Below are positions 27,884 through 53,800 of a stretch of DNA of 64,000 nt, one piece after another. The notes beneath the pieces were generated by a model, which saw only the letters and a program-made list of their open reading frames with translations, made no database searches and had not been told where the DNA came from. The first letter of the stretch is position 1. Every line of letters begins with the position of its first letter. The stretch comes from Bugula neritina. Its lineage: Eukaryota > Animalia > Bryozoa. Where the stretch lies: positions 10,178,698 through 10,242,697 of the forward strand of contig OZ037765.1 of assembly GCA_964035545.1 (NCBI GenBank), given 5' to 3'. Position numbers and translations under genes: made by a program.

Positions 27884-30800
27884 TTTACATGTTAGGCTTC
27901 GTCTGAGTTCAATGTCTGAAGCGAGAGAATTAAAAGTTTTAAAGTCATACTATGTACATATATTTTAGTATAAAATATGCTGCAAAATCAGTGATTCCTC
28001 TTTTTATTACCAGATATATTGATATATATTGGAACTCTAGATGTAATATATTGGAACTCTAAAGATGGTAACAGTGGCTACCAAAGTATAACTAAATATG
28101 CTTTTTATTGAATTTAAAAAAGCTCTTTAGCATAATTTTAACATTGCTTCTGGTAAATATTTTTATTCCTACACCTGTTGACTATGTTAACACTTGTAGA
28201 CAGCTGTAGCATGGAACTTTCAATCTGCTAATTAAAACCAAAAATTAGCAAATTGAACCGCAACTTTAGACAAATGCTAAGCAGCCCAAGTTGTAAAACA
28301 TCCATTTTATGGGACATTAAACAATAGATCAACAAAGGCTGGTTTAAACATAGAAACTTGCAAGAACCTATTATTTTGTTTTAGCAAAACATTCCATGAA
28401 CTAATGACACTTTGACAATGATTTTCTCTAATAAAAAAAGATCAAAATCAGGACAAGGTAGGTATTTATTCAAAGTTAAACTGATAACTTGACATAATTG
28501 TTGGTATTGAATAGAAATTAAATTTGTGATTGTCTCTTTTTGTGCCTGAAGTCAGTGATCATAGCAATACAAAAAAGCTGCATAGCCACATGCAACATAC
28601 ATAATAGTAAAATATTCACAGCATAGTAATAGTAGGGTATGTTGTAGGTCTTATCTTAGTATGCAGCAAAACCTTATAATGAAAGTTAATAAGTGCCAAC
28701 AAGGTGTAATAAAAGTATTTCTAAATCCTTACTGGCATTCTTAAAGTTCTTTATATAAGTTTGAAAATTAAATAAACTAAAGACTCAAGTGACTTAAAAC
28801 TAAATAGTAATACTCTTAGCAAAATTTACAGATAAAACTGAAGCAGGGTAAGGCTACTAATTAGTACTACTACTAGGTATAAAAATAATGTTATGATTAT
28901 AACAATTATTATTAATATTTACATTTATTAAATATATCCTATTGTCTCAACTTAAAGTTTACAGATTTACTACTTTGTTTTCATGACAAATCCAAGAGCA
29001 TTAAACTCAGTCTAATCAATAAGCTCAATAACAATATGTTTAACTACTATAATTATTACTATTACTAATTACTACCTTTAGCCTTTTACTTTTTGTATTA
29101 GCCTACTACTGCAAATGCACTCACTAAAACTAAAAGTAAAATAAATACTAATAATAAAAGTTAAATGTTGTTTTATCTATTTTAACTTGAAACTAGTTTG
29201 AGTTGTTAAATCCGTTTAGATCAAACCTTTACGTATATACAACTAATCATTAAACTCAAACTAGTGCTTATTATTTAACTTCATATTATTACAATTTTTG
29301 TTCAATTTAAATACTTATTCCTAATTATTATAGTTATACTTATAAATATTTATATAAGACTAAGTTAAAATTTAAATTTGTTCAAAATTCAAATTGTACT
29401 TCCAGTTTCAGTTTGAGCTTCTAATCTAATGACTGTAGTGAGTAATGAGCCAGTGACAATTTGAATCAACTTTGAAAACTGACATAAGAAAAAAGTATAG
29501 TAACTAAAACTAAAACTTATGTTATAGTGTGAACTGATAAAGTAAAAATTGCAGGCATCTAATAAAACTACAAAAATTCAGACTCTCACTCAGAATTAAA
29601 TTATTCGCCCAGGATGGCAACGGAACGCTTGGTTTCCAAAGTGTATAAATTGCCTCTTTGTTTAGATTTTAGGAAAACAAGCTAATCTGCGATAGCACGG
29701 CGCTATTTTAATAAAGGGAGGACAACTCGACCTAAATTATAACCACTGTAGCAAGCCAGTCTATATTGATATAATACAGAAATATTTCCCCTGAGCCGAT
29801 TATAGTATATATTATGTACTTTGTGATTAATAATTATAGACAGCTGGTAAATAACTATAAGATAAAATTTTAAACATGGTAAATGTAGTAGGACTAAGTT
29901 TAGCCAATTTTATTCCCATGTTCTGTGAAAAAAATTACGGCTTAAATAGCTAGGCAATGAATATAAATTTCCTAATTCAAAGTTTGTAAATTGATAAGAT
30001 ATTGTTCTAGCCTAAGTAAAATTCCCTTCGACTAAAGACTGCGTATGTGCAGAAGAATAATTGTTTAGGAACCAAGACTTAGCAAAATATTCGATTTTTG
30101 TAAGGCATCTTAGAAACTTATTCAAGGCATTATAAAGTTTAAAGCACAATACAGAACGATATGTAATATATTTTCAATATATGTGTTTACAGATGCAAAG
30201 TTAAAGTTCAAGCTAAAGACTAGTATTAAAACTATTATAGAGACCTATTTTATGGCCTAAGGATCACCACCCAATAGATTTACCACCATAAAAGTTCACC
30301 TAACTGTATTTCTGCATTTTAAAAACCTTTCAAGTCAAAGATTATTATGTTTAGTTATGTTTTATATGACAGCACTGCTGTGTGGCTAAAAATAATAAAC
30401 AATCTTTATATGATTGCGAAAAAGAAAAACCCGGCAACCAACTAAAATATGTTTTATAAAAATGTAGTAGCCGAAATATTATGCTTTTTAAATGTTATAT
30501 TCCTTTTACTAATATACATTAACTGTGGTAATTAAAATAAGCAAGTTTAATTCAATTTGAGTCTTCTCAACCTCTCTTATTTACCAGCAAATTATTTTAG
30601 ATGCCCTACAATACTTGCCATTGAAATATGCTCTTGCCAATTTTTCTTGCTGCAAATAAAAAATAACAGAGGAAAATATAAATAAAATTACAATGTCAAA
30701 TAATAAGGCTATATAAACTTTCTATATTATATATGTTTCTATTACTTTAGGATATGGTCAAGATCTTATGCATTTAACAAACTGGCACAAACCTTGTTTA

Positions 30801-32529
30801 GAATAAGTTGGTAGAATAAAATAAAAAAATATTTTTCCTAAGAATATTTGGGCTAGGCCTGGCTAGCCTATTTATTCAGTACATATATGAATTAAAGCGC
30901 AGTGACTAGTCACAGCTGCATGTTTTAGTAGCAACTTTTAATATTGCTACTTAGAGGCTATAGCAAAGCTGTAAAGGAAACTTGAGACATTTTTCATTCT
31001 GTCACATTTTTAGTACCACATGTTAAATATATGATTAGTAAATGGTAAGGTTAGGAATTGGATGACTTCATAATATACTAGTTTTTTTAATACTAGTTTT
31101 TTATTTATATATAATAAATATAGAATTTACATAAAATTTATTCAAACATATATTTTATATGTATGCATGCTAGCACAAAATAAAATTATATATTCTACTT
31201 TGTGTATTTACTGCATGTTAAAATAAATTAAAATTAAAAGTTCTTGTTAATTTAAGTTTGTAATTTGAAACTTTTACAACGGCTGCTACATTAATTATTA
31301 ATTTGTTAATTGATTTACACTCCCAACAAAAAACAAATTAAACACATTTTTACATATTCTTACACTAAAAACTACTATATTCACTTAAAATTAAAGATCA
31401 CATTTATTTTTAAAAGTAATAAAAATGCAATTAACATGACACCTATTATAATTGATAGCCCTAAAAACTTTTAAGATTATCAGCAATGACGTGGCCCGAA
31501 TATACATACTCTATATTATAAGCAATAATTCTAGGCACTCCTAAAATTTAGATAAATAATAGAAAGTTTTAAATTTTAATCATACTAAGTTATCGGAAGA
31601 AGTTAAATTAGTTAACTAATAATAGGCCAGTAAGTGCTATTTTAGAGCGCCATTAGTAGTTGACGTAATGCTGTCAAATGTGATAGCAATTAACAAGACT
31701 GATATATCACTCCCACCACTTTATAATTATAAACCTTGAAATGATACAGAATGTTTGCACTTAGGTTACTATCTCTGTTTGCCCATTAACTCATACACCT
31801 CCTCTATTTTTGCACGTAGACTAAAAAATTTTATACTGATTTTATTTCACAGTTTAGATTCTCTGAAAACAAGCTTATTTTAAAAGACTTTTAGGTGATG
31901 CTTTCGTCATTATACTTAGTGTCAGCTACAGCAGCAGCTCATGTATATAGTTTTCACCTTTGGCTATTTTATTGAATTGGCAAACACACACATACTTTAC
32001 TTAGCCAGCATCCAAACCTCTAGGCTCATTGTATTTTTGAGCCTGTTCTGAATTTAGTAATGGGATATTTATGTTCTTGTGAAATACTTGGAATTGTTAT
32101 GCTAGCTTGACTACAACTGAAATAATATGTTTATAAACTATTCTTACCAATAGCTGACTACTAATATTGCATTATATTTAGTTTATTATTTATAATTTAT
32201 TTTTACTGTCACTATAATAATGACGTTGTAGGGATATGCATGTATGTGTTGGCTTATTTTATGAATTCCAACTCATTCATTTATTTTCTATTTTATAAGT
32301 CAGATGCAGCTGGTATTAGAATTTATTTATATAGGAAACAAACTGTACGATGCAACTTTATATCAAACAATTTTAATGTGTGGATTTTACTTATATATGC
32401 TATAAATTAGAGTTTATTTTTTACATGTAAAAACAAGTTTGAAATCATAAAAATAGATGATTATTTTTATAAATTAATGTCAAAAAAATTTATTATGCCC
32501 ATTATCAGTAGTGATGATAAAACGTGTTG

Positions 32530-32796
<267 letters not shown>

Positions 32797-33988
32797 TTTA
32801 GCATACAATTATAAATTTTGTGCTAAAGTTTTGCTATATCCACTTTAAAACACAACTAGTAAAAAATAACTTTGGTTGGTTTGTGTAATAAAGTAAACAA
32901 CTCCTAGTGAGAATACAGCCGTCTATTTGACCAAGCATTTGGTTTTATGAAAGTTAGTATTAATAACCTTAAGGTAGCCTAAATTATTTATCAAAACAAA
33001 TTTTAGAGGTCATCCATATTTTTACAATATTGTGTTCTAGTAATGGTGATAGTAGCTATCATCAAATAAAATATCGCTATGATAAAATAATGAAAGTTGT
33101 AGCTCTATTCATTTATTATCACCATTATCTGCAAATCTGCATGTTTACATTTATCTATTTACACAGTATACACAAGCTATGGACCTGAATAATATTTATG
33201 CAGATAAATTCTTGATTTCCGTTACAAGGTACAAGAAAGCGTGACAGTTGTCTGTTCCCACAGCCTATTTACTAAGTGAAAGCTAACCCACGTGTCTTAC
33301 CAGTTCGTATTACCATTTTATTTGACTTAAGAATGATTCACCATCGTTTTGTTGACATAAATATTGTCATCATCCGGAAGTCCTTAGCATGCCACAGATT
33401 GCCTATCCGTAAAGTTCGCATAATTTTACAACTAATGTTGTAAGAAACACGATGGGTCTATTAAGGATAGATTTTTTTTTTATAAACAAGCTTGCACGAG
33501 TAATAATTTATATACTAATTTAAAGTTAGAGTTTATAATTAAAGCCTGACTTCCCATGATAGAGTTATTCAAGTGAGAAATTAGGCTCATTTTACAGCTA
33601 ATTCATTTATATATTTGTGCAACATGAATATTTAAAAATTAGACCCAATGAATCACTTGTGAATAGCTCTGTATAACTCTTAAACCTAAAGCATTGACTA
33701 CGCCTGTAGATTAATTTTTTTGACTAGCTTAGTTTGTAAATAAAGCTTTTTTACACTATTTTATAAAAAAGTCCATAGTGTTAAACAAAATAAAATGAAA
33801 TTAATACTTTCTTCTCAATATATCGCATAATGACATAAATTCTTATTAGTACTACAACATTTATATTTTTTTGAATAATCATATCCATAGTAAGCATAAG
33901 ATAAATATTAATATTTCAAGTGCACTGATTGCACAACCTCTGCTGAAAAGGATCTGTACTTATCTGCACATCCTTCAAAGAGTCACTT

Positions 33989-34128: not shown

Positions 34129-34973
34129 CCTTCAGAGGTTTGCATATCTTGCTACATAGAGGGCAGGAAATTAGCTCTGCTTTGACTATAGAAAATTGAA
34201 AAATTACATTTAATATTTTAACTAGATTCTAAAAGAAAAACTATAATATGATATATACATTATTCAGGTTTTAACACAGCCGTTGTTTTTATTCAAGAGC
34301 CTTTCAAATATTGAAAATAATCATCGTTCTACCAAATTTCAATCTATAGTTATCATTACAGACAGCACGTGGAAATGCACCACCTTTTGTCCAGCTAGTC
34401 CTTTTACAATAAATAATTATTATAAGAACTTCATTAAAGTATTTAATAAAAAGAGAAATGTTTATCTCATAACAGAAATTTGAGTAAAATCTCATATACA
34501 GTAAAACTTTCAAATGGAAAAAAAGGGCTGCTACACTTGTTAATATTTCTTATAATTATTGATAACATGGAATATGCAGGTGCATCTAGGCTTGTTTTGA
34601 AGCTATGCAAGATACTTGTAACATATAATAAGATAGTAAAAAAGATAACCTATCACTATTTTCACCAAAACAATAGGATAATGCATTGATAATTTACTTG
34701 GAAAGTAGCCTATACTATTTTACAGATAACTTGAGCATAAATTGTAAAACCAGAATCTGTTGAGAAATGCTAAACTAAATAAATTTTTCCATCTTTGATT
34801 CTGTGCCATGTGACCCATTTGTTAGTGACAAAGCAAAAGTACTCTTTACATTCTTTGCAATCACTAAAAATTAAAAAAACCCATTTCTCCTTTTAAGTTA
34901 AATACTTTAACAAAAGGACTGCAGCTATCTGCTTGTTGCAGTATATATATAAAAAACTCACGCAGGTTTATAG

Positions 34974-35137
34974 TCACTATTTCTGTGAGAACCCCTGATG
35001 GAAAAGCTTTTTTAAATCGTGCTAAGGACTTATTCAGATGGGGCACAGGAGCAATTATGACTGCATGGAAGCTTTTCCTAACATCATCCTCAGTGTCCGA
35101 ACTGAATAGCTGACCTCAGGGTAACTACACTACTGCT
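34974..35137 (-). mobile_element. SINE copy about 200 bp upstream of the prohormone TATA box
   Basis: CTGTGAGAACCCCTGATGG..GCTAAGGACTTA..GGCACAGGAGCAATTATGA..TTCCTAACATCA. Confidence 0.7.
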
Positions 35138-35330
35138 GATTTCTATTGCAATCCATATATATTACTGTCAAATATTCTCAATAAAATAAAATCTATTATA
35201 AAAGACCTACAGCAAGTTGCTTTTTTACAATACCTACGTTGTAGTAACATTGTCTCAATATAGATGTGTATTATTATACTTACTAGCTGATAAGCAATGT
35301 TTGTACCTATCAATTGCCTATAATCTCACG

Positions 35331-35367
35331 TATATAAAGAGCTCAAGCTATGTAAAAGGTGTCATTT
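35331..35367 (+). promoter_or_regulatory. TATA box plus initiator of the prohormone gene
   Basis: TATATAAA at 35331-35338 and TCATTT (Inr consensus TCAKTY) at 35362-35367, about 30 nt apart. A short first exon then ends in ATG|gtaag at 35415/35416. Confidence 0.7.
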
Positions 35368-35412
35368 CTATTTATCTTGTCATTGGTTAAACAAGCTGCT
35401 TCTCTCTACACA

Positions 35413-37068
35413 ATGGTAAGGATATGGAACTTGTTTGTGATTACTAAGACTTTGCCTATTCTTATAACTTATTTTATTATTGCATGTTAATAAGCTTTGA
35501 CGATATCACATTAAAATATTTTTTAATGACAACAAATTTTAGCTACAATTTTTTCATAAAAAAGTTAATAATCAAAATTTTCATAAGATTTCATTCTGTA
35601 CACAGTGGCATTATGTTCTTAGATAGCTGTTAGCAAGAGTATTTTAATATGTTTATAAAACTTTTTAAAATGCTCTACATAATTGGTTAGTTATAATATC
35701 TAAGTGTATATACAATAACAAATGAAAAGGTGTTGGTTAATAACCAACAAGTTATTAGGAGCAGCTGTGATTAGAGCACTGGTCATTGGTAATGTCAGAA
35801 AAAGCATCCGAACGCAATTGCTCTTGTGTTCCAAACTCATAGTCCTTAGCCTGTTTATAAACTCTTACCATAAAGGTTTTTCACAGAAATTGAGACTTTT
35901 GGCAAAAGCATGAGTTGTGAATGTTATTATCAGTTCTCAAAAATGATACCATTGGGACTGCTATATCTGTTGACAGCAGCACAGCTGCTACTTGTTTGAA
36001 CTTCATTTGATTCCTTAAGTTAAACTGCATGACATCTATAGCTATAAAATATAATTATTAAATTAAGTTTTCTTTAAAGTTATACAATAATATTGTTGGG
36101 GAAGTGCTAATCACAAGTGGCAAAAATTAGTGGTGTCTGAAACGTCTCAATTTTAAATTGCTTGAAGAAACACTATACCTACTTCTTTATTTCAAAGAAA
36201 ACTTATTCAATTTTATGCTGTAAAGCATTACTGTTAATTTTCTTTAAATTTATGTGACCTTAAATATCAAAATAACATAGTCAATAGAGTTTCTATTTTA
36301 AAGCTGAACAGCTTTAAACTTATATGGATCATGGTTATGTAGATAAATATAGGATAGTCATAAGTGATAATGTATGGAGGGCTAACAAAATATATAACCA
36401 AATAATTTTCATGTTTTTTCAATTATTGAATTGAATCACAAATCATTTAGATCCTTCACAGCTGCAGATGAACAATTTAAATAATATACTTACTTTTTTA
36501 TTTCAAAGAAAACTTATTAAATTTTATGCTGTAAAGCATAACTGTTAATCAGTTTACACATTTTAAAGCTATTTTTGTGAGAGTTTATTAAAGCAAAAGA
36601 GTACATGGCAATTCATTTTACTAAACTAACAGAAGTTGTTCTAACCATTCCATTCATATTGCACTTAGATCGAAATTTATCATTTATTTTCTACTGAAAG
36701 TTTTATATCAAAGGACAAAATTCATTCTGCTTTTAATGCTGCATCTTATATTTTAGGTGAGATCAAACTTTGCAACAGTCATTCTCCTGGCCTATCTGAT
36801 CATTGGTGTCTGCTGCATGACTCTAAACACAAATCCAGGAGCAGGCAACAGACTTGAGTCAAACAGCAAGTTCAAGCCTTCATTTTCACTGCTACTCAAC
36901 AAACTCCAACCAGCGAAAGCTGGCATACGCAAGCAGATCTGGAATCGCCGACAAAAAAGAGGCAATAGCTTGGCCAAACTGTTTGATATATACAAGAGCG
37001 CTTCAAGCTACAGTAAGAGTTCAACGAGCCGAAAGTCAGGACTCAGGTTCATGAGTGATGGAAAATAA
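35413..37068 (+). CDS. Secreted neuropeptide/peptide hormone precursor (104 aa); predicted mature amidated 33-mer GNSLAKLFDIYKSASSYSKSSTSRKSGLRFMSD-NH2
   Basis: Exon 1 contributes only ATG (35413-35415, donor gtaag); exon 2 is 36757-37068 after ttttAG. The protein has a hydrophobic signal peptide (MVRSNFATVILLAYLIIGVCC), a convertase site RRQKR and a C-terminal G-K-stop amidation signal. Confidence 0.8.
35758..35890 (+). mobile_element. Degenerate SINE copy (prohormone intron)
   Basis: ATTGGTAATGTCAGAAAAAGCATCC..AATTGCTCTTGTG..AGTCCTTAGC..AAGGTTTTTCACAG aligns to the family in forward orientation. Confidence 0.55.
36172..36549. repeat. Dispersed ~65-bp direct duplication (36172-36238 and 36483-36549)
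   Basis: Both copies contain TTTATTTCAAAGAAAACTTATT.AATTTTATGCTGTAAAGCAT.ACTGTTAAT. Confidence 0.8.
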
Positions 37069-37588
37069 GAAGACAATGACTTTTTGATCAATCAAGTGTT
37101 TTAATCAGGTTGCAAAAGAACACTAAATTTCACAATATTTATTATAATCTTCATGAAATAATCCCTGGAGTCAGAAATAACAAAATTGTAAGATATTATT
37201 TATGTTTGTACAATAGCATTTTTTGGTAAAATCAATATATTAATTATGCAAGAAAATTATTCTTACTTTTCTTCTATTTGATGGAATAGACAAATTGTAA
37301 ATATGTCACGTGTCAATCTATAAGTATGTAAAAATAACTATACATTTTGTAAAATATATTAAAAATTCATAATGCCAATTTTCAAATGATATTAAAAATA
37401 TAATATATTATTATTCCACTATTTCTTACGGCCCCAACAAAATCTATTAAAATGTTTGCCACATTTACATAAAAAAAATATTTGCATAAATTTTATTGCA
37501 TTAAGTTGTCATCTGACGCTTGCTCTTAAACCTGCTAATATTGGCATAGTCTAGATAAAACCCAAATCTTTTTAATTGCCACATTCTA

Positions 37589-40500
37589 TTAGACTAAAGC
37601 TCCACAATCTGGTATGTCCAGTTTTTGACTAAGTTGAGTCACTGCATTTATGATATTGTTTTGATTTGCCGTCACCTGAGTTGGCTGCGTCATAAAGTTC
37701 ACGTCCTTCTTTTCTGGCGTTTGTCGCAATGCCAGTGGACTAAGTTTCCGAGATTTATTAGCGTTGAGATCTATGGGTAGCAAAACATCGGGAATATGGC
37801 TACCTCGTCTGCTGCTGGAAACCGTATCCTCACTCACCCGCCTGCTGTTTCGTCTTGAAGAGTACTGACACGTCGTCGTCTCCGTTTCCGTCTCATCTTT
37901 TTTAATAACTGAACTTGATCTCCGCTTTCTTGACCAGGGACCGTGGGAGGGCAGAGTCTGTTCGTCTTGCCAGTGACGATAACTCTTGGTCAATGATGAT
38001 CTGACTTCTTCGTTCAGGAAACAGTAAACTAAAGCTACTACAAATCCCTAAAAGTAAAATTTAGTAGCTATATTTACAGTATTTATAACAATATATAAAA
38101 CAATAGGAAAATATCACATAAGTGTGCAGTATAATATACATTTACTTTCACATCCTCTGCAGGTAAACCCATTTTTGAAGTTACATTACATAACTTAATG
38201 TAAAATATTAGGCTACAACTTGCATGATACAACTTGTCTCTCGATCTCTCTGATAAATTCCAACCTTTACATATATTAGGGTTATAGTAAATAGAAAGCC
38301 GTGTATAGTGTATACCATATATGTAAACCACATAGTACTTACTACTGTTGATTGAACGATGGAGTTGATGTAGACCCAGATAGTATACCCATGACGGTCT
38401 GTAGGCCTAACTATGATCAGCAGATATGTACCTCCCAATAGTGGTACTAAGACTATTAGGGCTTTTAAGGCTTTCCTGTAAATTATAAAGATATCATCAA
38501 ATCTTCATTTCTATAAACAATGTGCTGACGTTTTACTCTAACAGTTCCCAAGTAGAATCAAAACATAAAATTAAGCTATTTTTCAAGCTGTTATGTTTTG
38601 CTTATTTTATATTAAAATAGTAGAGCATGTATTTTATATTTTGACAAGTATAGAAAACAGTATAAACCACCACCCGATCAAGACATGATGGTGAAAGGTA
38701 AACATAGAAAACAGTATAAGCTATACAAAAGCACACGTACCCATATTGTTTTCGCTCGTTGAGAGCAGAGTTTCTCAGTTTCCTCACCAACGTATATATA
38801 ACGCCGATCATGAATATTGCACAAATCTACAAGTATTATAAGATACAATACAAGTTTTAGTTATCAAAATAATGTAGATATATTATGTGAACTTTTTAAA
38901 AGGTAACTGTATTGTATTATTTTATCATAATCAATGAGCATGGTAACAATCATATGAGATAACAACTATAAAAGGAAATAATTGCAATGTAATAAAAGTC
39001 TAAAAACCTTATATAACATTAATTGATGACTATTTACTAGTTAACATTTGAGATATGGCAAGCAGGACTGCATCATTCATGCTTAAGTAGTATTAGGTGC
39101 ACATTAATGTATGCTGAGTAAATTAATTTTCATATCTATATCACATAGCTCTGTGAGCCCATGCTTCTAATCAACTCACTAGCTAAGCCTAATTGCCAAA
39201 CATGATGCAATTTAGCTGAGTGGTCATAGAATCAGTTGATTTAAACGGAATAACTATGCCGAGGTTGTATCTAAGATATTGCTGCCTACTCTAACAACGC
39301 ACGAGCCAGTGCTGCTTAACATACCGCAAGAAAGATAGTTATGGTCACACTTTCTATTGCATTAGCTGGTTCAAAAAAGCTGCCAGAGTGCCAACACCTA
39401 AAACAAAGTAAAAGCATATTCGTCACTGTGATAAACAGTAAGGAGTTGAGATGACAGGCTCTAATTTTGAATAATAAAACAATCAACTACCCAAAGTTTA
39501 TATCTCTGAAAATGTTTTGCAATTTAACTAAAGAGTAAAAACAATTATGAGAAGGTTGAACACATTTATGTAAGAACACAACTCCTTACAGTATCATTGA
39601 TGAGCTTTCATTATACTAGCCTGTGCCTAAGCATGACTTAGAGCTGTTCAAGGTTGATGTTTAGCTACAGAAATTAGGCTATAAAACTATTCTGCTATAT
39701 TATTATAACTTTCACATAAATGTCATTGTAAACTATTATGTTATATTATAACTTTCTCATAGATGTCATTGTAAACTTACGGGTCTTTGGCTGTCAACAC
39801 ATTAACTATAATACAGGCCAACGTAATCAGAGTAGGCAACCCTGCAAAATATAAAGAAACATATACTCATACAACACACATGCATTACCACAATACACTT
39901 GAGTTAAACTATGCTTGTATAGCCTGCTTGTTCTGTTTTATTAAAAGATGCAATTACCAAACTTACCCCAGCCAATCAGTGTGCAGTGTTTGAACTTCAA
40001 CTGATCTGTAAGGGAAGCACCAACTACTACTATAAAGAGATATAGTCCTTCAATGAAGATCCAGGAGAACTGAGACAGGTAGAAGAACTTGTGTAACGTG
40101 AAAAGTGTCTTGCATTCAATCTAAAAGTAAAGCCTTTGTTTTAGTTTACGAGCTGACAAGAGTAGTAAAAAATGCTTGACATTAAAACTAAAAGGCTGCC
40201 AGGATAAAACTAACTGCTGCTAAGCATTCTGTCACAATTTTAGGCATAAAATCTGTAAACAATAAGACTGCTTTTTGATATCATTATATGTTCTTTTCAC
40301 ATTCATAATTATTGCTTCTATTGTCAACCTAAAAAGCTTTGAGGTTTCAGCATTTGGTGTACTATTTTGCTTTCCCATACTTTGCATTTTTAGGTTTCTT
40401 TGACTTAGTACTATATATAGTTCATGCTATTCATGTCTTGGGAACCAAAATACATAATAATAGTCTTACTATTTTCTCAAGCAGTTTATCATTCAATGTC

Positions 40501-43500
40501 CCATGCATTACTGCTATCCACACAATGTTCTTCATAGTGATTGCAATGAACAGCTGACTGTGTATCAGGTTCCTCAAACAGCGTAAATGTCTACAACACA
40601 AGTTATGAAAAAGGTGTAAGCCCGGATGAAGCAGCTAATTGATGCAACTGCTAGTAACAGCTAATATATTCTCAAAGCTGGGTCTTCTCATGCAACTTGG
40701 GTCAGATAGTTGTCACCACAACTCAGTGTAGCAAATACCAATCATATAAACATCTAAACATGATACATGAATTGATTTAATAGACAACAAACTTATGTCC
40801 CTAAATTCCAAGACTAACTTTGTTCTCATGATAATGAGCTTACCTACATCCAGGTATGTGAACCACCCACTTTTATAGCCGCCCCAACAAAATTTCCTTT
40901 AGACTAATAAGTTCATACAAATGGTGTCTCATTTTGCATTAACTGCCTACTGTTGTACAAAAATGTTGTAGGACAATATTCCAAATATAAAACTTTAGGG
41001 TGTAACGCATTAAAGAATATAACAAATCTGTTATTTTATGGTTCTCAAGCAATAAATGAACTTTTAATTTAATTAGATTAAAGTTGAAAAGTGCTCTGAG
41101 AGGTGTGACCAGGGCTGGCGATGGGAAAATTATCCTACAATAGTTAAGAGCAGACTGCACGGCTGCTAATTCAATGAAATATACAACTAACATAAATCAA
41201 GCTGCTAAAATGTAGTAACTATAATAATAATAAATTTACTTGTAGGCGAGGAATATAACGACAGCGATGATCATAGCAATGTTGGATAGGATGAATCCTC
41301 CAAGATAAATAAATGTGGCATTTTTATTTAGCTTCGCCTCTTTCTAAAACAACAAGAGAGTGATATGTTAGCTATGGAGACCGGACAAAGCAATAACTAA
41401 TAATCCGATTGAAACATTCTTCTCAACAGATAAGAAACTATTATTCTTTGATAAAATATAAAATTGTTACCTTAACAGCAAAAAGGCCTGCTTTATGTTT
41501 AAATATTGAAACTTTTGAATGTCATAATTTTCAATTAAATTCTGATTAATGCAATTCTTATCACTGGGGAAAAAGAGGAAGCAAACTTCTACTGTATTTT
41601 TAATATTTAGTTTTAGAAAAATGAAAAAAGCTAGAAGAAGTTATAAACATGAAATCCAAGTGCACTACTCACGCAAACACATTATATTTATAATATGAAA
41701 ATTCATGCACCTAACTGGCAGCCATCATTCCTTTACCTACCTTTAACAGATCTTCATATTCTAGCAGCTCATCGATGCATTCATCAAAGTTTGCTTTAGC
41801 AGCCCATGTTCCGTTTACATCACAATATCTGCTCACTGACCCTAAAAAGCATAAATTATATTGCTTAAAAATCGGCAAGCTTTATATTAAAGCAGGGAAA
41901 TATTTATACAATGCAACATTTGATGTTAGTGTATCAAGGAAAGACTTTTCCATTCCATTATACTTGTATCATTCAGTGAAGCTACCATATAACAAAATAC
42001 CAAAGCTGAATTCTCCGTATGTTGACCATGAAAATTTTAAATTTTCATTAATTGAACAAAAAGAAAAGTAGTTACTATTAAGGATTAAAAACAAATGTAT
42101 TGCAAGTTGTCTTAGTTTTTATATGTAAAAGAGACACATTTACTGGTTATTTTATATAAATGCTTTTAGGACCAACAAACCTTCTTCAAAGTTTTAAGGT
42201 TTTAGTATTATGCAAACTGAGATTATAGGCTAAAACTGACTAAAAACCTGTATTGATCCAAATTATAGAGAGAAATGTCTTGGTCATGTAAATGAGCACA
42301 ATGTTAATGGTTGTTGTAATGCGATGTATGCATTATCTTTAACAGGTAATTGGGTATACTTTCAAGCTCCATTCCACAACTTGACCTTTAAGTTTAGGAT
42401 GAAGTTCAAAGTAATAATTGAATGTCAAAAAGATCATTAATGAAACTACTGTACAATTGCTTATTTAGTATCAAGAAAAATGCTACGCTAGCTTTAAAAA
42501 AAGTTGTTTTATTTGTTAGAAAGCAACGAATAATGTAGATATTTGGATATAAGAGATAAAGCTTTCTGATAACTTTTCATAGATTTGGCTTCAATGGGAA
42601 AAGATTAGGCACAATAAGATTGAGCCGACAAGCTTCAGGCAATTGCTTATATAAGTTGGCAGTGTTTGTATTTTCTTTTAGCCACAAAAATCAATTAAAA
42701 CCCTCTTTCTTTCTATTTTTAGATATGTTTAGTCATTAAATTACAAACAAAAGTTACTGTCAAAACAATTAGTGAGCTAGTGAAATTCGAAGCAACTAGA
42801 ATCAAAAGGTTGAATCAACATTTTATGGCGATTGTTTATTGCTGGTTTACTATATCCAGTCTGCACGTTCACAAAATACATAAAGGATGTAGGTAAGCTT
42901 TGTGGTTAAAGCTGTTTGGTGCAGGTTTCTCAATCAGCAGCGACTCAAATGCAGATGAAATCATAAATCATGTTCTATATACTGTTTCAAGTTTGTTTTT
43001 CAAAGAATTCACCCAGTCATTAATAGTTATTACCTATTTTCTGATTAACTCTAATTAAAAACTGGAAAAATTGAGCCAAATGGATTAAAAACAATATTAA
43101 ACCAGCTGTGATATGCATATAAACTTTAAACTAACAATAAACACAACAAAAGCAAAAAAATGCTATATATCTGCTATAGGTACAATGTTTTTTAAAATCC
43201 CACTCTCACTCCCAATATGACGCAGTAAATTAGCCATATTCTGATAGTACTCTCCAGTAAACTTAAATTGCTATGGGTATAAAATGTGATAAACTTCAAA
43301 CTCAAATTTCAGCCAATGGATGCTAGTTTTTCTATAACTTTGTTTTAAGAAATGCACAGTTTTTATAGAAAAACAGGGCTTTTTATAACTTCTTACCAAG
43401 ATATACAAGTTTTTTAACATTTGTCAGAAAAAATTGCAATATTCTCACTAATGTGCAATTAGATGCAAATTTCAAACAGGTTTTATATGCTGGGTGTAAA

Positions 43501-46500
43501 ATATTTCAAGATTTTGAAGTCTGTAACCCTCAAACCTCTAGGTATGTGAAAGCTTGTAATTTTTAAATGGTGTCTCCTATCTACTTTACTATTTACTGTT
43601 TTCGTCACATTCAATTAGAACAATGAAATATAGATTTCATATAAGAAATACAGTAGTGCAATGTTAATAAGCATAATATATGAGAACTTCCACAACACCA
43701 CTTTAGCTAATTGAGAATTTGTTATGCATTTATTCTTTTTTGCAGTTTATGTCAGACTTTAAAAGTCTGAACATTAGCCACTACTCTTAAATGTTTGGGT
43801 TTAAGTTTGGTTTTGAGGAATACTTCTATAATTGGTTACTAAATCGCTGCTTCAGCAGCATATGACTTCAACCCACATCAAGAAATCTTGTTGTTGAAAA
43901 TTAAGTTATTTATCTGGAACTTTTAATCTATAGGGTGTAAACGGTTTACCTTGTTGAAGAACCCCTTTGTTTTATTAGTCAACAATACTTGCAAAACCTG
44001 CACTCATATTGCTACAATATTAACTGATTCACAGTTCATCTACTAAAATAACTCAGGTGATAAAAATTCAATATGCTTTGTTTAATTGCATAGTAAAGAT
44101 GAAAGGCAACTGTTTGTCTTCATGAAAGCAAAATATTATGATTCTAAGATATAAATAAGCAAAGGGGTCATTAATCATATAATTGTTAAATCCTTGTTTG
44201 TTAGTATCATCTAACACTTTATGTTTTTCAAGTCAAATAAGATTTTGCATATCTACAAGATAGCCTACTTGGTTTTTGTATTATTTTGCAAAGAACAATT
44301 TATTGATGGTTGCATCATACCATCTGGTTTTAACTCACTAACTTTAAAAATTGATTTACATATAGAATTAGCTGATCGGATATGTGATTGAGTTTTTTCA
44401 GAAGATTTTTAAGTTCGATTGAAGTAGGTGCAATAATGGAGAAATTGAGAAAAACCTGTGTTCTAGATTAGAAATGTAGCATAAGCAGTTATGTTCTCGC
44501 AAGAATTTTAGCAGGCGCCCCAAGCTGAAATTTAATAAAAAAATTAAAGAATTTAGGTTATCTCAATTTCTCCTAAATGTTCGATTGACCTTCACTTTCT
44601 TTTTGTAGTGAGCAGAGTAAAAGTCTGAGCAAGGAGTGAAGTCAGTTGTAAACAACCACAGCTAGCTATAATGTTATACGCAATTAGCCAGTAGTGATAC
44701 CCTCAAACAAAGCCACAACTTCTTTGTGAATTTATTTTTATATTTCATGAGTGCTTATTTTCAAGAGCTTGTGCGGTTCAAATCAATTACAGTTCATAGA
44801 AAATATAATGCTACATCCAATTCAGTGGTCATGGCTGCTCTAAAGTTGAGGAACATCAACTAAAAGTTGGAATAGAGGCATTGCTCAAAATTTATTATGT
44901 GTCTTTGTCAAAGAGCTTCGTGCCAAAAGTCTAACCAAATGCGTGTTTTTGCCCTTAATATGCAATAGTTTTTTTTAAGTTAGAGGTTAATTTTAGGTGA
45001 GAGATGATAAATACAAGTAGCAGGAGATAAAAATAGCTCTAATCAAAGGAATTCTCAATGATTTATCAGTTGTGATAATCAGGCAAAATGTGTACTTGTC
45101 CTTTGTTACTCACCTAATTTATTTCAAATAACAAGTGGCTGGTTGAAGAGTTTGATTTTAGGTGGCAAAAAATATCACCACATTTGAATATCTTGTAAAC
45201 ACAATACTTAAAATGAACAGTTGGTTAATGACAGGTACATGTAATTCAATTTCTTATTTGATTAATTTCTCTATTTTAATCGAGCCCTATGCAGTCATTA
45301 TAAATTATAGCACTACAGCTTTAATAGCATGAAAGTAAAATTTAATTTTCAAGATTTGTGTTAAAAATACTTCAGGTTGAAAGCAATTTTATGTTCATAA
45401 ACTACTTGGCTTGTCTGTAAGAACTTTGACATTCTTTCTGCTAAAATTCATAGCTTTTAAAAAACAACATTTATAAATCAATAGTACTAACTGTTGTTAC
45501 TAGTTATGTCAAATATCATTTAAAAAACCTTTCAACAGAAAAATTCAAAAGGACACAATTATGTTACTTTGGAAGGAAAGTATCATGAAATAATTAATAT
45601 TTAGTCAGGGCAATAGCATGAAATGCTGGACCAAAAACTGTGTACATTTATCGATTAGTATTTATATCATCATCATTTAAAAACTGCTATAAACTGCTAT
45701 ACAAAGTTCATTAAAACGAATGATCAACTATATTCATAACTAGAGGTTGATAAAAAACTTATTTAGATTTAAATTCCAATAACACTACCATATATTTTCA
45801 AAATTTTACACACCTCTTAGTGTAGGCAAATGCGGTGAGCCACTTGAGGGACACGGCTGGCGGGCTGTTTCACCTGCTTCAATAGGATACCAGACTAGGA
45901 ACTTGTCTTTACAAAATCCACAGTAATCTCCTAAAAGTACGACAGTATATTATTAGTCATGATAATAGTCTATAGCATATAGACATCAATAGTAAAGTTA
46001 TAATATTGCTGGCAACACTAAAAACTTGTTGGCTATATATACTGGATTTTATCAATAGTGGTATTATCAAGTTGGGAATTACCTTAAACCGTTGTTGCTC
46101 TCTTTTGAGCTCCAATTTTTATTGTTGCACCTGATTTTTAGTAATTCAAATTACAATCATAAATCGTAACACTATCCTTGCATATTTTCAGTTTAAAGGC
46201 AGTACCTAATTAATAAAAATTGACTTTTACAAGAAAGCTCTGGGTAAAGGTCAAAAACTGGTTACATTAAAAATAAATCTAGAATATAATTCTAAACATG
46301 TTTCTGTGAACCTACACAACCTAATAATCATCAATATAACTGCAGTTATCAATGAAAAAACTCAGACCCGTGGTGACTCGTTTTACTAATTCTTCTTTTT
46401 AGAGCAGTTAAACATACAACATTAATTTCAAATGGGTTATTAAACTTTCAACAAATGTGAAGTATACTAGGATTTTGAACTGAATTTACTTTTAGAGGAG

Positions 46501-46915
46501 ATAATCACGGTGCAGTAAACATATTATTCAATCAAGGATATTATAGTTGAACATTTCCAGACACTTACAATTTACTGCTTAACGACACTACTCTACTTCT
46601 TTGAAACAGCTGATTATATATTTCGAAAAGGTGTACACCTTAGAAATAAATCGGAATTGTAATTTAGAAAATGGGTAACATACCTGTTGAGGTGTAGTTT
46701 TTACAGTCCAATATAGTTAGAGAAGCATCGACGAAAGCGGTGGTTGTATAATTGTTTGTCAACTGAGTCAAGTTAACGGCTGGAAGGAGTTCTTCAAATG
46801 TACTTGTTTTACCATCTACAGAGTTGACTTTGTTTGTATCATTAGTTGCTAAAACCAACAGTGACTGTGTTAACAAGTACCCTAATAATATGCGGTAAGC
46901 CAGCATGGTCTCCAT
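37589..46915 (-). CDS. Class B1 (secretin-family) GPCR, CRF/diuretic hormone 44/ELH receptor-like, ~546 aa, 11 exons
   Basis: Exons 46684-46915, 45814-45930, 41741-41841, 41240-41343, 40470-40590, 39967-40120, 39781-39841, 39325-39397, 38741-38826, 38343-38475 and 37589-38047 sum to 1641 nt in frame. Motifs: signal peptide, ECD GETARQPCP and RYCDVNGTW..NFDEC, LRCLRNLIH (ICL1/TM2), WIFIEGLYL (TM3), IGWGLP (TM4), KLRNS..E.KQY.KALKALIVLVPLLG.TY (ICL3/TM6), GFVVALVYCFLNEEVR..HWQD (TM7/H8). LRCLRN and KLRxS..QY are typical of the CRHR/DH44R branch. Confidence 0.93.
39683..39778. repeat. ~45-bp tandem duplication next to the GPCR exon 7 donor
   Basis: AAACTATT.TG.TATATT(ATT)ATAACTTTC.CATA.ATGTCATTGT occurs twice. 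Confidence 0.7.
44426..44575. mobile_element. MITE family A copy (GPCR intron 2)
   Basis: taGGTGCAATAATGGAGAAATTGAGAAAAACCTGTGTTCTAGATTAGAAATGTAGC..TCTCAATTTCTCCta. Confidence 0.75.
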
Positions 46916-48166
46916 TATTGAAGATCCTATGTTATAGTTGGAGGCAGCAAAATGAGAAAATAAGCTCTGATTACTTATAAGCAACCTTCAACAGAAGTGC
47001 CTAAGAAAGATAATGTTTTGTCTGCCATTTGCATTAAATATATACCCATGACTTCTCGTATTTGCAACAATCTGCAGAAGTCATCTCATTGGCTATGACT
47101 CCCTTAGAACATAAATTGCATTTCATTGACAGACTCATTGAACGTAATGACCTTTTAACCACACAATATACTTAAACCTTAGTTTCACTTCCGATGTATT
47201 CAAGAATATGATAACCTTTGAGGCATTCCCAAACGTATGACCTAGGGCTAATTTTTATCTGTTGAACATATAACTATAACAGCATACTCTACACAGTTGT
47301 GCCATGCACTAGCTGGCACAGGAAAAACCCTTAAATGAATTGTAAACTATCTTTTGTAACAGACTCTGCTGTATAATTTCACTTGCATACTAAAAAGTTT
47401 AGTGCATAACTATAAAATCAATTAAATGTATTTTATAAGAATATGGTGGAAATCAATGAGCATAAACTATCTGTTAGTTGGTAGTCATTGTTTATTAGTT
47501 GATAAATTATATATTTTGCATATATCCAAAAATGACTGTGAATTAGTATGTGTATTTTATTAAGTTATTTCTTTTATTTTATCTGTTACAAGCAAAAATC
47601 TTTGGAATAAGCAGAGTCTTACATAGGCTAAGAAAATTTGTGGTGGTTTATTTGTTACATAAATCATATGATAAATGCAGTTTATACAAAGGCAGTATTT
47701 TTGCAACCTCGATTACTCATACCGGTTGTTATTTTACTACTTCTTTGGTACCCAAGGCATAGCTAAAACAAGTGAAAAGCAAAACTTTAATAAAATATAT
47801 GCAATTATGGTTTTTATTTTGTAGTATAGCTTTATATTTCTTAGCTTTGAGTGACAATGAACAAGAAGTGTTCAATATTAGTCAGCTTCTAAAATAGTCA
47901 AACTGCACATATCATTGTCTGAAAGGCTCAATAGTAAAATTATTTATCCCTATTATTTTACTGCTTTACATTTTTATTGAAATAGTGAAACTGCTCAATA
48001 ATTATTATGCTTGTTTCAGATTTCAGAGAGTTTTGGCTTTTACTGTACATGTAAATATTTATTAAATTATAGAGTTTTCTCCCCACAATTTTAAGAAGTA
48101 CTCGTTGCGCATCGGTTGCGCAGGTTGTTTATGCGTTACTACTGATACAAGAAAAGCTATTGGTTG

Positions 48167-50849: not shown

Positions 50850-53800
50850 ATGAGTCAAGACAGATCACACAGACGAGGAGGGGAGGATGCTCTCTATAGA
50901 ATTGCACCCCACCACTACATTCATGTCTTGGATCAGAATACGAACATCACCACCTTGCACATTGGACCCAAAACCTACATTCGCCAGGACAATGAAAGGC
51001 AAGTACTATGTATGAACTGCTTACTTAGTAAATGTGGTGATTTTGTATTATTTTCAATGATGAAAAATACTAATCAGTAAATAACTATTTAGTCAGCCCA
51101 CTTTAGCAGCAGTATAACCTAAATGCTCTCAACAGACACTGTAAAGTTGAAGCAAATGTCATTAGCCAGTAAATTTCCAGTCCTGCTGGAAACGCATTGT
51201 GTGCAACAGGAAATCAGTTTATTGTGACCCTAGGCTAATTTAGAGTATTGTTGGTTTATCTGCTATGAAGTCAGCAGTTTAATTTGAAAAAAAGAATTGT
51301 TGCTACCAGCATAGCTGCCCTTGCAGCTCCCCCTGTTATCTGATGTGACAACTCACTGATTTTTGTAGAGTGGTGTTTGGTCCGGAGCGAATGATCACTA
51401 TTCCTCCAAGACATTATTGTGTAATAGAGAATCCAGTAGCCAGAAATGATGACAGTGAGGTTATTATGGATAATGGCCAGGCTAAACTCCTTCATGCTGA
51501 CCAGGAAATTCGACATGCTCAGGCAAGTTGTGCTTAAAATTCATTTGTCTTACCATTTCCTGTGCAATCAGTAATTAGGGAGGATTTAATGCGTTATTTG
51601 TTCTGTTAACACAAATGAACAGTATTGTGTATTTTTAACATTTGAAAATATTTCCCCTGCAGGATCCTTTCCCACTGTACCCAGGGGAGGTGGTGCACAC
51701 AAAAGTCTCGCCTCTGAAAGTTGTAGAGGCTAATTCAGCACTCAGACTAAAAGCGTTACTAGACTTTGAAAGTGGACCAGAGAAACGGACAGCTGGGGAC
51801 GAGTGGCTATTTGAAGGCCCCGGTAAACTTTATGCCACCTTTACTCAGTCTATACATGACCTATTTGTTACTCAGTCTACTTATTACTCCGGCAATGAAT
51901 CTCTTAAATGCATCATACAGTTTACTTCATATCCTACAAAAATATTACATTGATTAACTCTATTAAACTCAAGAGCTCTCTAATTGCCCACAGTTATCAA
52001 GTACATTGTATGATGCTGTGCTCATGATTAGGTACCTACCTGCCAAGGAAGGAGGTCTCAATAGTGGAGTCCGTCAGGTCTACGATAATAAAACCTAATC
52101 AGGCCATCAAGTTGCAAGCCAGAAAAGAATGTGTTGATAGAGACGGTAAGCAGCGAGTGACTGGAGAGGAATGGCTGGTAGAAAGAGTTGGTGCTTATCT
52201 CCCCGGGGTCTACGAAGAAGTTGTAGACATGGTAAATGCCTATGTGCTCACTGAAAAGGTTAGTTCAAGGGATTGACATTTTACACTGATCTTTGGTTGA
52301 GTGTTTGGTTACTGCAAAGATGCTAGTTTCTGTGTTGCATTATTGATTGAGAGTTGTCATTTGGACACCGTTGATTTGCTTGCCCGACGTCCTGCTGGCC
52401 TTTGCCATATCGATAGACAGCTATCTGCACCTGCAATCTCATACACTATATTTTTAAGATTACTGCAGCTAATTAGTCTATGTTCTTGATTCTTAAAATA
52501 TATATAAGGAACTGCATATATGTGTGTGTGATGGAGTCTTGCTGATTTATTTCCATGCTCTAATCAGTGGTTGCCTCCCATGTCAGCTGTTCAATTTCTC
52601 TTGTTGGTATTTCATAGGTGGCTCTCCATATGAGGTGTTTGAAGTCATTCACAGATCGTTCAAATCAATCGAGGAAGAATGGTGAGGAATGGCTGATCAA
52701 GATGTCCGACACCGAAACCTACATTCCCGACGTGTACGAGGAGGTGGTGGGCGTGGTTAACATCACTTCACTCAGCAACCGACAGTACTGTGTCATTCTA
52801 AATCCTGTGGACGAGAACGGCAAACCACAGCTTTCCAAGAAGAAACTAGTCAGGGTGTGTTTTAAATGATCAAATAAATTCAAACTACATGCTTGCAGAA
52901 TATATATTAAATATTGTAAGAAGCCTATCAAGTAGTTTGGCCTTAAACTTAAACTAAAAGAAGTGGTTGTAAATTAAAAAAAACATTAGCTATTTATTTG
53001 AATATGTCATTATTCTGTGTTTTTAGGGCGAGTGCTCATTTTTTCTGATGCCCGGGGAAACACTGGAGAAGGGAATACAGGCTATTTATGTGCTTGGTGA
53101 ACATCAGGGCCTGATTCTGAGGGCTATTGAGAAATTTGATGATGGCGTAAGTTGAGCATCTTCCTTTGTGCCAGGTTTGCTTTTACACAGTTTTATTATT
53201 TTGTTATCTTTGATATTAAGTTCAATGCATATGTTTCTAGCCAACCAAGCGCAACCCTGGTGACAAATGGATGATTCGTGGACCCACAGAGTATGTACCT
53301 CCAGTTGAGGTAGAGGTTGCGACGGAGAGACTTGCGATTCCTCTTGATGAAAACGAAGGGATTTACGTCCGTGATGTGAAAACTGGCAAAGTATGTTTAT
53401 GATTAGTATATTGATAATGTTTGTGTTGCTAGCATAGCACTGAGAAATATAGACTACCATATAGTAATTGTAAACGTTTAGGTTCGAGCTATAACGGGTG
53501 AGACCTACATGTTGAAAAGTGATGAAGAGTTGTGGAACAAGGAGTTGTCGCCCTCTGTTGAGGAATTACTTGCATCAGGAAAAGACCCATTGGCTGACAG
53601 GGGAACTCGAGGAGGTGTGTGTATGACATCACAGTGCTTCTTCAACCTACTGATATGATATTAAGAAGGCAATACTTGACATGTTTTGGCCTCATTATTG
53701 GATCCACAGCTACTAGAAAATGTCAATTGGAAAACACTTATTTGGAAAACGGACAATTCACCAATAGACAACTGGAAAATAGACATTTGAAAAATGAAGA

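Follow-up and report, generated by a model that had tools for sequence, protein, structure and literature searches.

What Is Encoded at the Locus

The 64,000-nucleotide window analyzed here (Bugula neritina contig OZ037765.1, positions 10,178,698 to 10,242,697; positions below are counted within the window) contains a small gene for a putative amidated peptide and a gene for a class B1 G protein-coupled receptor (GPCR), which lie tail-to-tail on opposite strands with stop codons 520 bp apart and raise the question of whether the product of the small gene is the ligand of the adjacent receptor. A first-pass annotation of the sequence had proposed such a linked ligand-receptor module. Both genes are real and transcribed, and the tail-to-tail linkage is conserved between B. 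neritina and the distantly related bryozoan Watersipora subatra, in which an unannotated gene of the same build lies tail-to-tail with the orthologous receptor gene; this is the key new result. The module stands as a conserved gene pair, and the retention of the same arrangement in a distant relative makes the peptide a good candidate for the ligand of the receptor. That the product of the small gene acts on the neighboring receptor, which is of the CRF/DH44 type, is proposed here tentatively, at somewhat less than even confidence.

Conserved Linkage in Watersipora subatra

The closest named relative of the window receptor is a W. subatra protein, placing the window in a bryozoan genome (assembly size 216 Mb, window contig >10 Mb, A+T content of the window 67%). 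W. subatra is the only related bryozoan genome reachable for comparison of the linkage, and its receptor locus was compared with 10-kb flanks on either side (20 kb of flanks). The microsynteny check advised in the first-pass annotation reveals the same tail-to-tail pair in this one reachable bryozoan. The W. subatra peptide gene lies ∼505 bp beyond the stop codon of the orthologous receptor and is encoded by the other strand, spans positions 30285-31952 (-) of the compared locus and is missing from the RefSeq gene calls there. Its open reading frame (ORF) follows an AG acceptor and opens with a segment resembling a signal peptide, continues with a KR site immediately ahead of an SFDL motif and a furin-type RSIR site, and ends in RWMSV-Gly-Lys-stop, being the only ORF that ends in G[KR]-stop across the 20 kb of flanks. 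An ATG-only exon 1 followed by GTGAGC is located 1.15 kb upstream of the ORF (1.34 kb in the window), and TATAAAAG lies 77 nt upstream of this exon, the corresponding distance of the window TATA-like box being 81 nt.

The anchors conserved between the two precursors are SF[SD]L, W.R..R, SL, KL[FY][DE][IL]Y, [ST][SN]RK and R[FW]MS[DV]GK. Those falling inside the 33-residue peptide predicted from the window gene are SL, KL[FY][DE][IL]Y, [ST][SN]RK and R[FW]MS[DV]. A shuffle test of this peptide against its W. subatra counterpart gives p = 0.04, and the pro-region of the window precursor compared with that of W. subatra gives p = 0.0135, a value that is modest by itself and convincing when taken with position, orientation, spacing and gene architecture. 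Contigs from another bryozoan species that carry a receptor exon are each <2.5 kb, and a genomic contig from a sister lineage of the window ends at position 38120, before reaching the peptide gene. A tandem array (units of roughly 90-180 nt) occupies positions 32360-33300 of the compared W. subatra locus, just upstream of the peptide-gene promoter, and yields overlapping ORFs of 41-65 codons on both strands.

Structure and Transcription of the Peptide Gene

The features of the window peptide gene, with the evidence for each, are as follows.

35332-35339 (+), TATA-like box, read from the sequence, 81 nt upstream of the start codon
35347-35415 (+), exon 1, consisting of 5' untranslated region (UTR) with the ATG (35413-35415) as the last three bases; RNA contig X7#9
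35416-36756 (+), intron of 1341 nt, GT..AG; skipping joint in RNA contigs from runs X1, X2 and X7
36757-37068 (+), coding part of exon 2, residues 2-104 and stop; ORF and RNA contigs from four studies
Roughly 36757-36825 (+), hydrophobic signal-peptide-like segment; Kyte-Doolittle profile
36880-36945 (+), pro-region segment termed unit 1, with a conserved SF[SD]L..L motif; aligned with the W. subatra segment directly after the KR site
36946-36960 (+), RRQKR furin/prohormone-convertase site; aligns with W-x-R-S-I-R in W. subatra
36961-37059 (+), predicted 33-residue C-terminal peptide termed unit 2; anchors conserved with W. subatra and the shuffle test given above
37060-37068 (+), Gly-Lys-stop, comprising the amidation donor, a basic residue and the precursor end; identical ending in W. 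subatra, and the oyster DH44 precursor is alike
37069-37380 (+), 3' UTR; RNA contig to at least 37318, ATTAAA at 37358

The exon 1 ATG directly abuts the donor GTAAGG, exon 2 is preceded by an AG acceptor and the stop codon occupies 37066-37068. The RNA evidence consists of contigs from public runs, whole-sample and unstranded, aligned to window positions 35100-41000; the RNA and DNA runs derive from the diverged sister lineage, which is 87-95% identical to the window. A joint 35415>36758 is present in contigs from three independent studies, one contig consisting of 35347-35415 joined to 36758-37318. The first base of exon 2 (36757) is substituted in the sister lineage, hence the joint is read as 36758. 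Spliced RNA is the sole explanation for a joint that removes 35416-36756. In a fourth study (X10) the contig is confined to exon 2, bringing to four the studies in which transcription of the precursor is seen. The complete small gene described in the first-pass annotation, with an ATG-only exon 1, signal peptide, RRQKR and Gly-Lys-stop ending at 37068, is thereby borne out, and the peptide gene is expressed yet unannotated. The same annotation had assigned a TATA box with an initiator; the TATA-like box is present, but the proposed spacing between the two elements is left unverified, as the RNA contig already begins at 35347, just 15 nt past the box. A minimal upstream ORF (ATG followed by TAA) is found in the 5' UTR at 35351-35356.

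The precursor has 104 amino acids arranged as a hydrophobic N terminus, RRQKR, the 33-residue peptide and Gly-Lys-stop, with the signal peptide assigned from a Kyte-Doolittle hydropathy profile and inspection. Unit 1 is not followed by Gly and so would not be amidated. Compared with the sister lineage, the gene shows 19 substitutions and one in-frame 3-nt insertion in 334 nt. The general features of a prohormone are present (signal-peptide-like segment, basic sites, amidation signal, and an mRNA that is both transcribed and spliced), and the small gene is very probably a true prohormone gene.

Structure of the Receptor Gene

The receptor gene is encoded on the reverse strand with the following features, listed from the N terminus.

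46684-46915 (-), exon 1, start codon, signal peptide and N-glycosylation-rich N terminus; ORF, GT donor
45814-45930 (-), exon 2, first half of the HRM ectodomain; Pfam HRM positions 2-29, splice sites, frame
41741-41841 (-), exon 3, second half of the HRM ectodomain; Pfam HRM positions 38-65, splice sites, frame
41240-41343 (-), exon 4, transmembrane segment (TM) 1; four runs have a loose end at 40590 that matches the exon 4 3' end, tblastn to W. subatra
40470-40590 (-), exon 5, end of TM1 to TM2, CLRNLIH; Pfam 7tm_2, best PDB matches CRF1R, RNA joint and loose end
39967-40120 (-), exon 6, TM3 to intracellular loop (ICL) 2, EGLYL and GWG; Pfam 7tm_2 at 44.9 bits, RNA joints
39781-39841 (-), exon 7, TM4; RNA joints, frame
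39325-39397 (-), exon 8, extracellular loop 2, CW motif; RNA joints, frame
38741-38826 (-), exon 9, TM5 and ICL3, where Cys replaces the invariant TM5 Asn; RNA joints, same residue in the sister lineage
38343-38475 (-), exon 10, TM6, PLLG, ending with Val in place of the invariant TM7 Gln; RNA joints, best PDB matches CRF1R/CRF2R
37589-38047 (-), exon 11, TM7, helix 8, Ser/Arg-rich C-tail and stop (37589-37591); RNA joint 38047/38343
37081-37588 (-), 3' UTR; contigs X1#2 and X2#8 extend from 37081 across all of exon 11

The 11 exons form a single 546-codon frame from the ATG at 46915 to the stop at 37589-37591, every intron being GT..AG. RNA joints verify six introns located in the 3' half, the loose end verifies the exon 4-5 junction, and exons 1-3 are drawn from splice sites, reading frame and homology. 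The 7tm_2 family (PF00002) matches exons 5 and 6 with 24.3 and 44.9 bits (cut-off 20.6). The HRM domain matches exons 2 and 3 over positions 2-29 and 38-65 with 19.5 and 21.5 bits (cut-off 26.2), each exon remaining under the cut-off because the domain is split by an intron; in the W. subatra orthologue the Pfam scores are 156 bits for 7tm_2 and 40 bits for HRM. The C-tail encoded by exon 11 is 63-71% identical to that of W. subatra. Frame, Pfam matches and RNA joints agree with the earlier description of a full 11-exon class B1 GPCR that ends at 37589 on the strand opposite to the peptide gene and about 520 bp from it.

Receptor Class and Selective Constraint

Database searches with the receptor used single exons or the W. 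subatra orthologue as query, and the joined 546-codon model was used in local alignments and the tree. The exon 6 query (TM3-4) retrieves the full-length W. subatra orthologue XP_067947087.1, named "corticotropin-releasing factor receptor 1-like," and the best named matches of this orthologue are the CRF receptors of Lingula and Lamellibrachia, arthropod diuretic-hormone receptors and CRFR1/2. In the PDB ranking CRF2R/CRF1R score 205 bits, the calcitonin receptor reaches 155, and PTH1R and PAC1R reach 152; the calcitonin and CGRP receptors, both included, are 50 bits below the CRF receptors. A maximum-likelihood tree, from which calcitonin/DH31 and PDF receptors are absent, pairs the window and W. 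subatra receptors (100/100) within the CRFR/DH44R clade (100/99) and apart from the PTH, VIP and GHRH receptors. The CRF/DH44 assignment made in the first-pass annotation is established by the PDB scores and the tree clade. A genome scan finds no second CRF/DH44-type copy in the 216-Mb genome, and the receptor is the genome's single class B1 GPCR of the type. At least six further HRM-domain exons occur elsewhere in the genome, from other class B or adhesion receptors, and one of these lies ∼280 kb from the window on the same contig (9898616-9898765, +).

The stem of the bryozoan receptor pair is very long (2.23 changes per site), and the two receptors are 47-49% identical. As had been suspected, the window receptor is divergent at conserved positions, deviating at four columns that are invariant in 21 homologues (Y>F, V>I, TM5 N>C and TM7 Q>V). 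The TM5 Asn to Cys and TM7 Gln to Val replacements are the two radical changes among these; both are also present in the sister-lineage genomic contig, whereas the W. subatra receptor retains all four invariant residues. Over exons 4-10 the receptor differs from the sister lineage by 27 synonymous and 4 non-synonymous codon changes, with intron divergence of 7.4-8.9%, so the receptor is unusual but constrained. Judged from these codon changes, it is under strong purifying selection and functional.

Searches for a Peptide Family and for Other Ligands

Neither bryozoan precursor matches any Pfam family at E ≤ 10. A PDB profile search with the precursor, protein-database homologue searches with the window precursor and the two-species alignment, and a scan of JGI metagenome contigs for precursor homologues are all blank; the blank word-based searches are weak evidence because only proteins of similar length sharing 5-residue words are detectable. 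The 2016 catalogue of B. neritina neuropeptides (PMC4990251) lists neither the peptide gene nor a DH44/ELH-type peptide. The peptide thus remains unrecognized, as first described.

Searches for a canonical ligand elsewhere in the genome, all of limited sensitivity, covered the CRF, ELH and DH44 families. The CRF model (PF00473) gives four sub-threshold matches genome-wide, none peptide-like and none at the peptide locus, and the ELH model (PF02323) gives no match. The mollusc DH44 core was scanned as a 35-place degenerate DNA pattern with 86 genome matches, from which 50 loci were fetched, those left unfetched being stop-containing or extra copies of one repeat; no stop-free locus among the 50 has an upstream basic site together with a convincing amidation signal. 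A dispersed repeat family at ∼20 places over 0.16-4.25 Mb of another contig carries an identical 35-nt stretch that translates to S-I-N-G-T-L-P-C-L-A-S-L and that the DH44 pattern had matched. The one copy examined lies within a 25-codon open stretch and is therefore not a peptide gene.

By protein-language-model features, nearly every neighbor of the two bryozoan precursors is a neuropeptide prohormone, with many families represented, including DH31 and PDF; these neighbors provide a lead, the feature overlap being too low to name a family. The arthropod DH31 (DH2-like) and PDF prohormones form the nearest named clusters (0.91 and 0.91 for the window precursor, 0.87 and 0.85 for W. subatra) and are also small prohormones, their peptide products acting through receptors of class B. 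In contrast, 112-149 of 256 features are shared where 170 or more are usual in family members, there is no Pfam match, and the adjacent receptor is neither of the DH31/calcitonin type nor of the PDF type.

Comparison with CRF/DH44/ELH Systems and with Linked Peptide-Receptor Loci

DH44/ELH/CRF-type receptors occur throughout the lophotrochozoans, and peptides of the CRF/DH44/ELH group are the expected ligands of the type of receptor encoded next door. Published lophotrochozoan DH44 precursors contain one to many peptide units. In the lophotrochozoan DH44/ELH precursors, as in the window precursor, a signal peptide is followed by units of ∼30-45 residues bounded by basic sites. The oyster DH44 precursor has two units, the last of 34 residues and ending in Gly-Lys-stop, and the placing of the last unit at the precursor end with Gly-Lys(-Arg)-stop is shared with the window gene, in which this unit has 33 residues. 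A likeness to DH44/CRF is confined to short motifs, none significant alone: S-[FLI]-[SD]-[LI] near the unit start, and [SN]RK a few residues ahead of the amidated end, which may be CRF-like. Substantial differences occur, however. The Pfam CRF and ELH models match neither bryozoan precursor, and the mollusc/annelid core LS[IV]NGxLxSLAxML is absent. The bryozoan units are mutually dissimilar (p about 0.3 for unit 1 against unit 2 within each precursor), so that a reading as two DH44 units derives from the architecture only; the first unit carries no amidation signal and the W. subatra peptide has 54 residues.

The receptor side shows a similar mixture. An HRM ectodomain and 7tm_2 core, the placement in databases, PDB and tree, and the motifs CLRNxIH, EGLYL, GWG, PLLG and YCFLNxEV in the window receptor are as in the CRF/DH44 receptors. 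The differences are the very long bryozoan stem, the loss in both bryozoans of one canonical ectodomain Cys column, the long Ser/Arg-rich C-tail, and the TM5 Cys and TM7 Val of the window receptor where W. subatra keeps Asn and Gln.

Linked genes for a secreted peptide and its receptor, both fast-evolving, are found at the plant S-locus (SCR/SRK) and at the pheromone/receptor mating loci of basidiomycetes. The bryozoan pair resembles these in having peptide and receptor genes side by side over long evolutionary time. It differs in that those loci carry many co-adapted alleles under suppressed recombination, whereas nothing here indicates an allelic series or a self/non-self function, and the bryozoan pair would be endocrine or neuropeptide in nature. 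A narrow search of the literature turned up no published example of genetic linkage between a neuropeptide gene and the gene for its own GPCR.

Is the Peptide the Ligand of the Adjacent Receptor

The best explanation overall combines a prohormone, a cognate receptor, diverged DH44 descent and retained linkage, and is favored at just under an even chance. Processing, amidation, DH44 ancestry, binding and G-protein coupling we infer as follows. The precursor would enter the secretory pathway and be cleaved at RRQKR here and at RSIR in W. subatra, both of furin type; the terminal Lys would then be removed and the C-terminal Gly converted to an amide, giving a C-amidated product of 33 residues here and ∼54 in W. 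subatra. The ligand of the neighboring receptor would be this amidated peptide or a longer uncleaved form that includes the SF[SD]L segment. By analogy with the CRF/DH44 family, the HRM ectodomain would bind the amidated C terminus and signaling would proceed via Gs/cAMP. The precursor would most likely be the bryozoan descendant of a lophotrochozoan DH44/ELH gene that diverged alongside the fast-evolving receptor, with the two genes lying tail-to-tail and ∼0.5 kb apart, their convergent 3' UTRs probably overlapping, since before the split of the Bugula-type and Watersipora-type lineages. Descent of the precursor from DH44/ELH, taken separately, is possible but doubtful; instead of founding a new family, the peptide could be a highly diverged one of the DH44 type. 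Whether bryozoans in general hold a co-inherited hormone-receptor pair, the ligand being either a diverged DH44 or a new family replacing DH44, is a suggestion toward which we are likewise more skeptical than confident. Support for the combined explanation comes from the two-unit, Gly-Lys-stop architecture like that of oyster DH44 and from the genome scans, in which no canonical ligand was found elsewhere. Further support is drawn from the expression and splicing of the two genes, the prohormone features of the precursor, the CRF/DH44 class and single copy of the constrained receptor, and the linkage shared with W. subatra.

Several observations weigh against it. The precursor has no statistically significant similarity to CRF/DH44/ELH or any other family, and the candidate ligand differs between the species in length (33 compared with 54 residues) with 36% identity over aligned columns; the W. 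subatra peptide has internal KK/RR sites, and recutting there would shorten it. The middle of the 33-residue peptide is Ser-rich and probably non-helical, while class B1 ligands are normally one continuous helix, and the furin site splits the DH44-like N-terminal motif from the amidated C terminus. Divergence of the peptide exon from the sister lineage is 5.7%, not far under that of the receptor introns. At the CRFR loci of Lingula and Lamellibrachia no related or GK-ending tail-to-tail ORF occurs within 10 kb, flanks that are possibly too short. Occasional chance neighbors of a peptide gene and a GPCR gene are expected from a genome-wide scan, and genes 0.5 kb apart can remain linked passively.

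The main rival, almost as likely as a cognate pair, is that the gene encodes a real neuropeptide acting on another receptor, the true DH44-type ligand being encoded elsewhere and too diverged or short to be found, with the linkage retained passively or because the 3' ends are hard to separate. The peptide has no sequence link to any class B ligand family, and its length and composition are atypical of a continuous class B helix. DH44/ELH precursors have escaped detection in whole phyla, the ligands having been missed in brachiopods and phoronids although receptors are present (PMC8557429), so the blank ligand scans elsewhere in the genome are weak evidence. Complex prediction with W. subatra receptor residues 80-440 and the 54-residue peptide gave a score of 0.01, a "no answer" result that lends the pairing no support and, being uninformative, counts neither way. 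Against action on another receptor, the pairing of the genes has outlasted divergence of the receptors to below half identity, whereas the other window neighbor, which encodes major vault protein and lies 4 kb from the receptor gene, is missing from the 10-kb flanks of the receptor in W. subatra. Precursor size, amidation signal and the Gly-Lys-stop layout are moreover as expected for a ligand of this receptor type, and the very long branch of the receptor fits a strongly diverged ligand.

A non-hormone secreted protein (defense, adhesive or matrix), or a precursor from which the amidated product is never made, with the Gly-Lys end and basic sites being incidental, is unlikely. It would account for the lack of a family assignment, the Ser-rich, low-complexity middle of the peptide, the fast divergence between the window and W. 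subatra precursors and a language-model "recognition" value under the level of most known families. The conserved parts, however, are R[FW]MS[DV]-GK-stop and the furin-type site, which is the pattern expected where processing and amidation matter, and neuropeptide prohormones make up almost all of the language-model neighbors.

Convergent 3' Ends

The 3' UTRs of the peptide and receptor genes probably overlap by ∼240-300 nt, as the lower limit of the receptor contigs is 37081 and the upper limit of the peptide contig is 37318.

37081-37318 (both strands), probable overlap of the convergent 3' UTRs

The overlap is drawn indirectly because the RNA contigs are unstranded. Poly(A) signals on the minus strand (AATAAA at 37143 and ATTAAA at 37105) complement that of the peptide gene, the signals fitting both gene ends. 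Substitutions relative to the sister lineage amount to about 4.7% in the UTR/intergenic stretch 37081-37588, under the 7.4-8.9% of the introns, a difference suggestive of constraint where the 3' ends overlap. Between the window and W. subatra no conservation of the intergenic sequence was found, and Rfam families have no match at window positions 34500-47500. Convergence of the 3' ends, the near-equal stop-to-stop distances (520 and 505 bp) and the lowered UTR divergence would all suit a transcript acting mainly as RNA, as a convergent antisense regulator of the receptor mRNA via the 3' UTR overlap with a minor role for the ORF, but this is very improbable given that the ORF, signal peptide, cleavage site and Gly-Lys-stop are kept in W. 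subatra where the intergenic sequence is not, that the sole ORF indel against the sister lineage is in frame (3 nt) whereas all six UTR indels are of 1-2 nt, and that Rfam is blank.

Implications

The locus offers a concrete, synthesizable bryozoan ligand candidate with which the receptor can be directly deorphanized. If the pairing is true, the locus would be a rare instance in which the genes for a peptide hormone and its GPCR are kept adjacent, and the first described animal neuropeptide-GPCR pair that is genomically linked. It would also mean that a receptor lacking two "invariant" class B polar residues still works with a co-diverged ligand, and would suggest that "missing" ligands of fast-evolving receptors, overlooked by sequence searches, can be located through gene position. 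If the pairing fails, a new, conserved and unannotated bryozoan prohormone gene is still gained, and the corrected receptor gene model is obtained in either case.

Other Features of the Window

The major vault protein gene (50870-55983, +) and the receptor gene are arranged head-to-head, with ∼4 kb separating the former from the receptor start codon. The exon at 54492-54896 matches MVP_shoulder with 117.6 bits and Vault_3 with 68 bits, and a typical N terminus is located near 50880. Upstream of the peptide gene, a (TA)n-type microsatellite at 32467-32808 reads as a 113-codon "YI" repeat ORF. A trinucleotide-type low-complexity tract at 58297-58700 encodes poly-Leu, poly-Thr/Ala or poly-Cys/Tyr according to the frame. 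The ORF at 8718-9263 (-), for which Pfam returns only weak coiled-coil matches, consists of ∼12 tandem Cys-rich nonapeptide-like units (C-x-C-D-T-G-T-x-V-N-R) followed by a coiled-coil-like tail.

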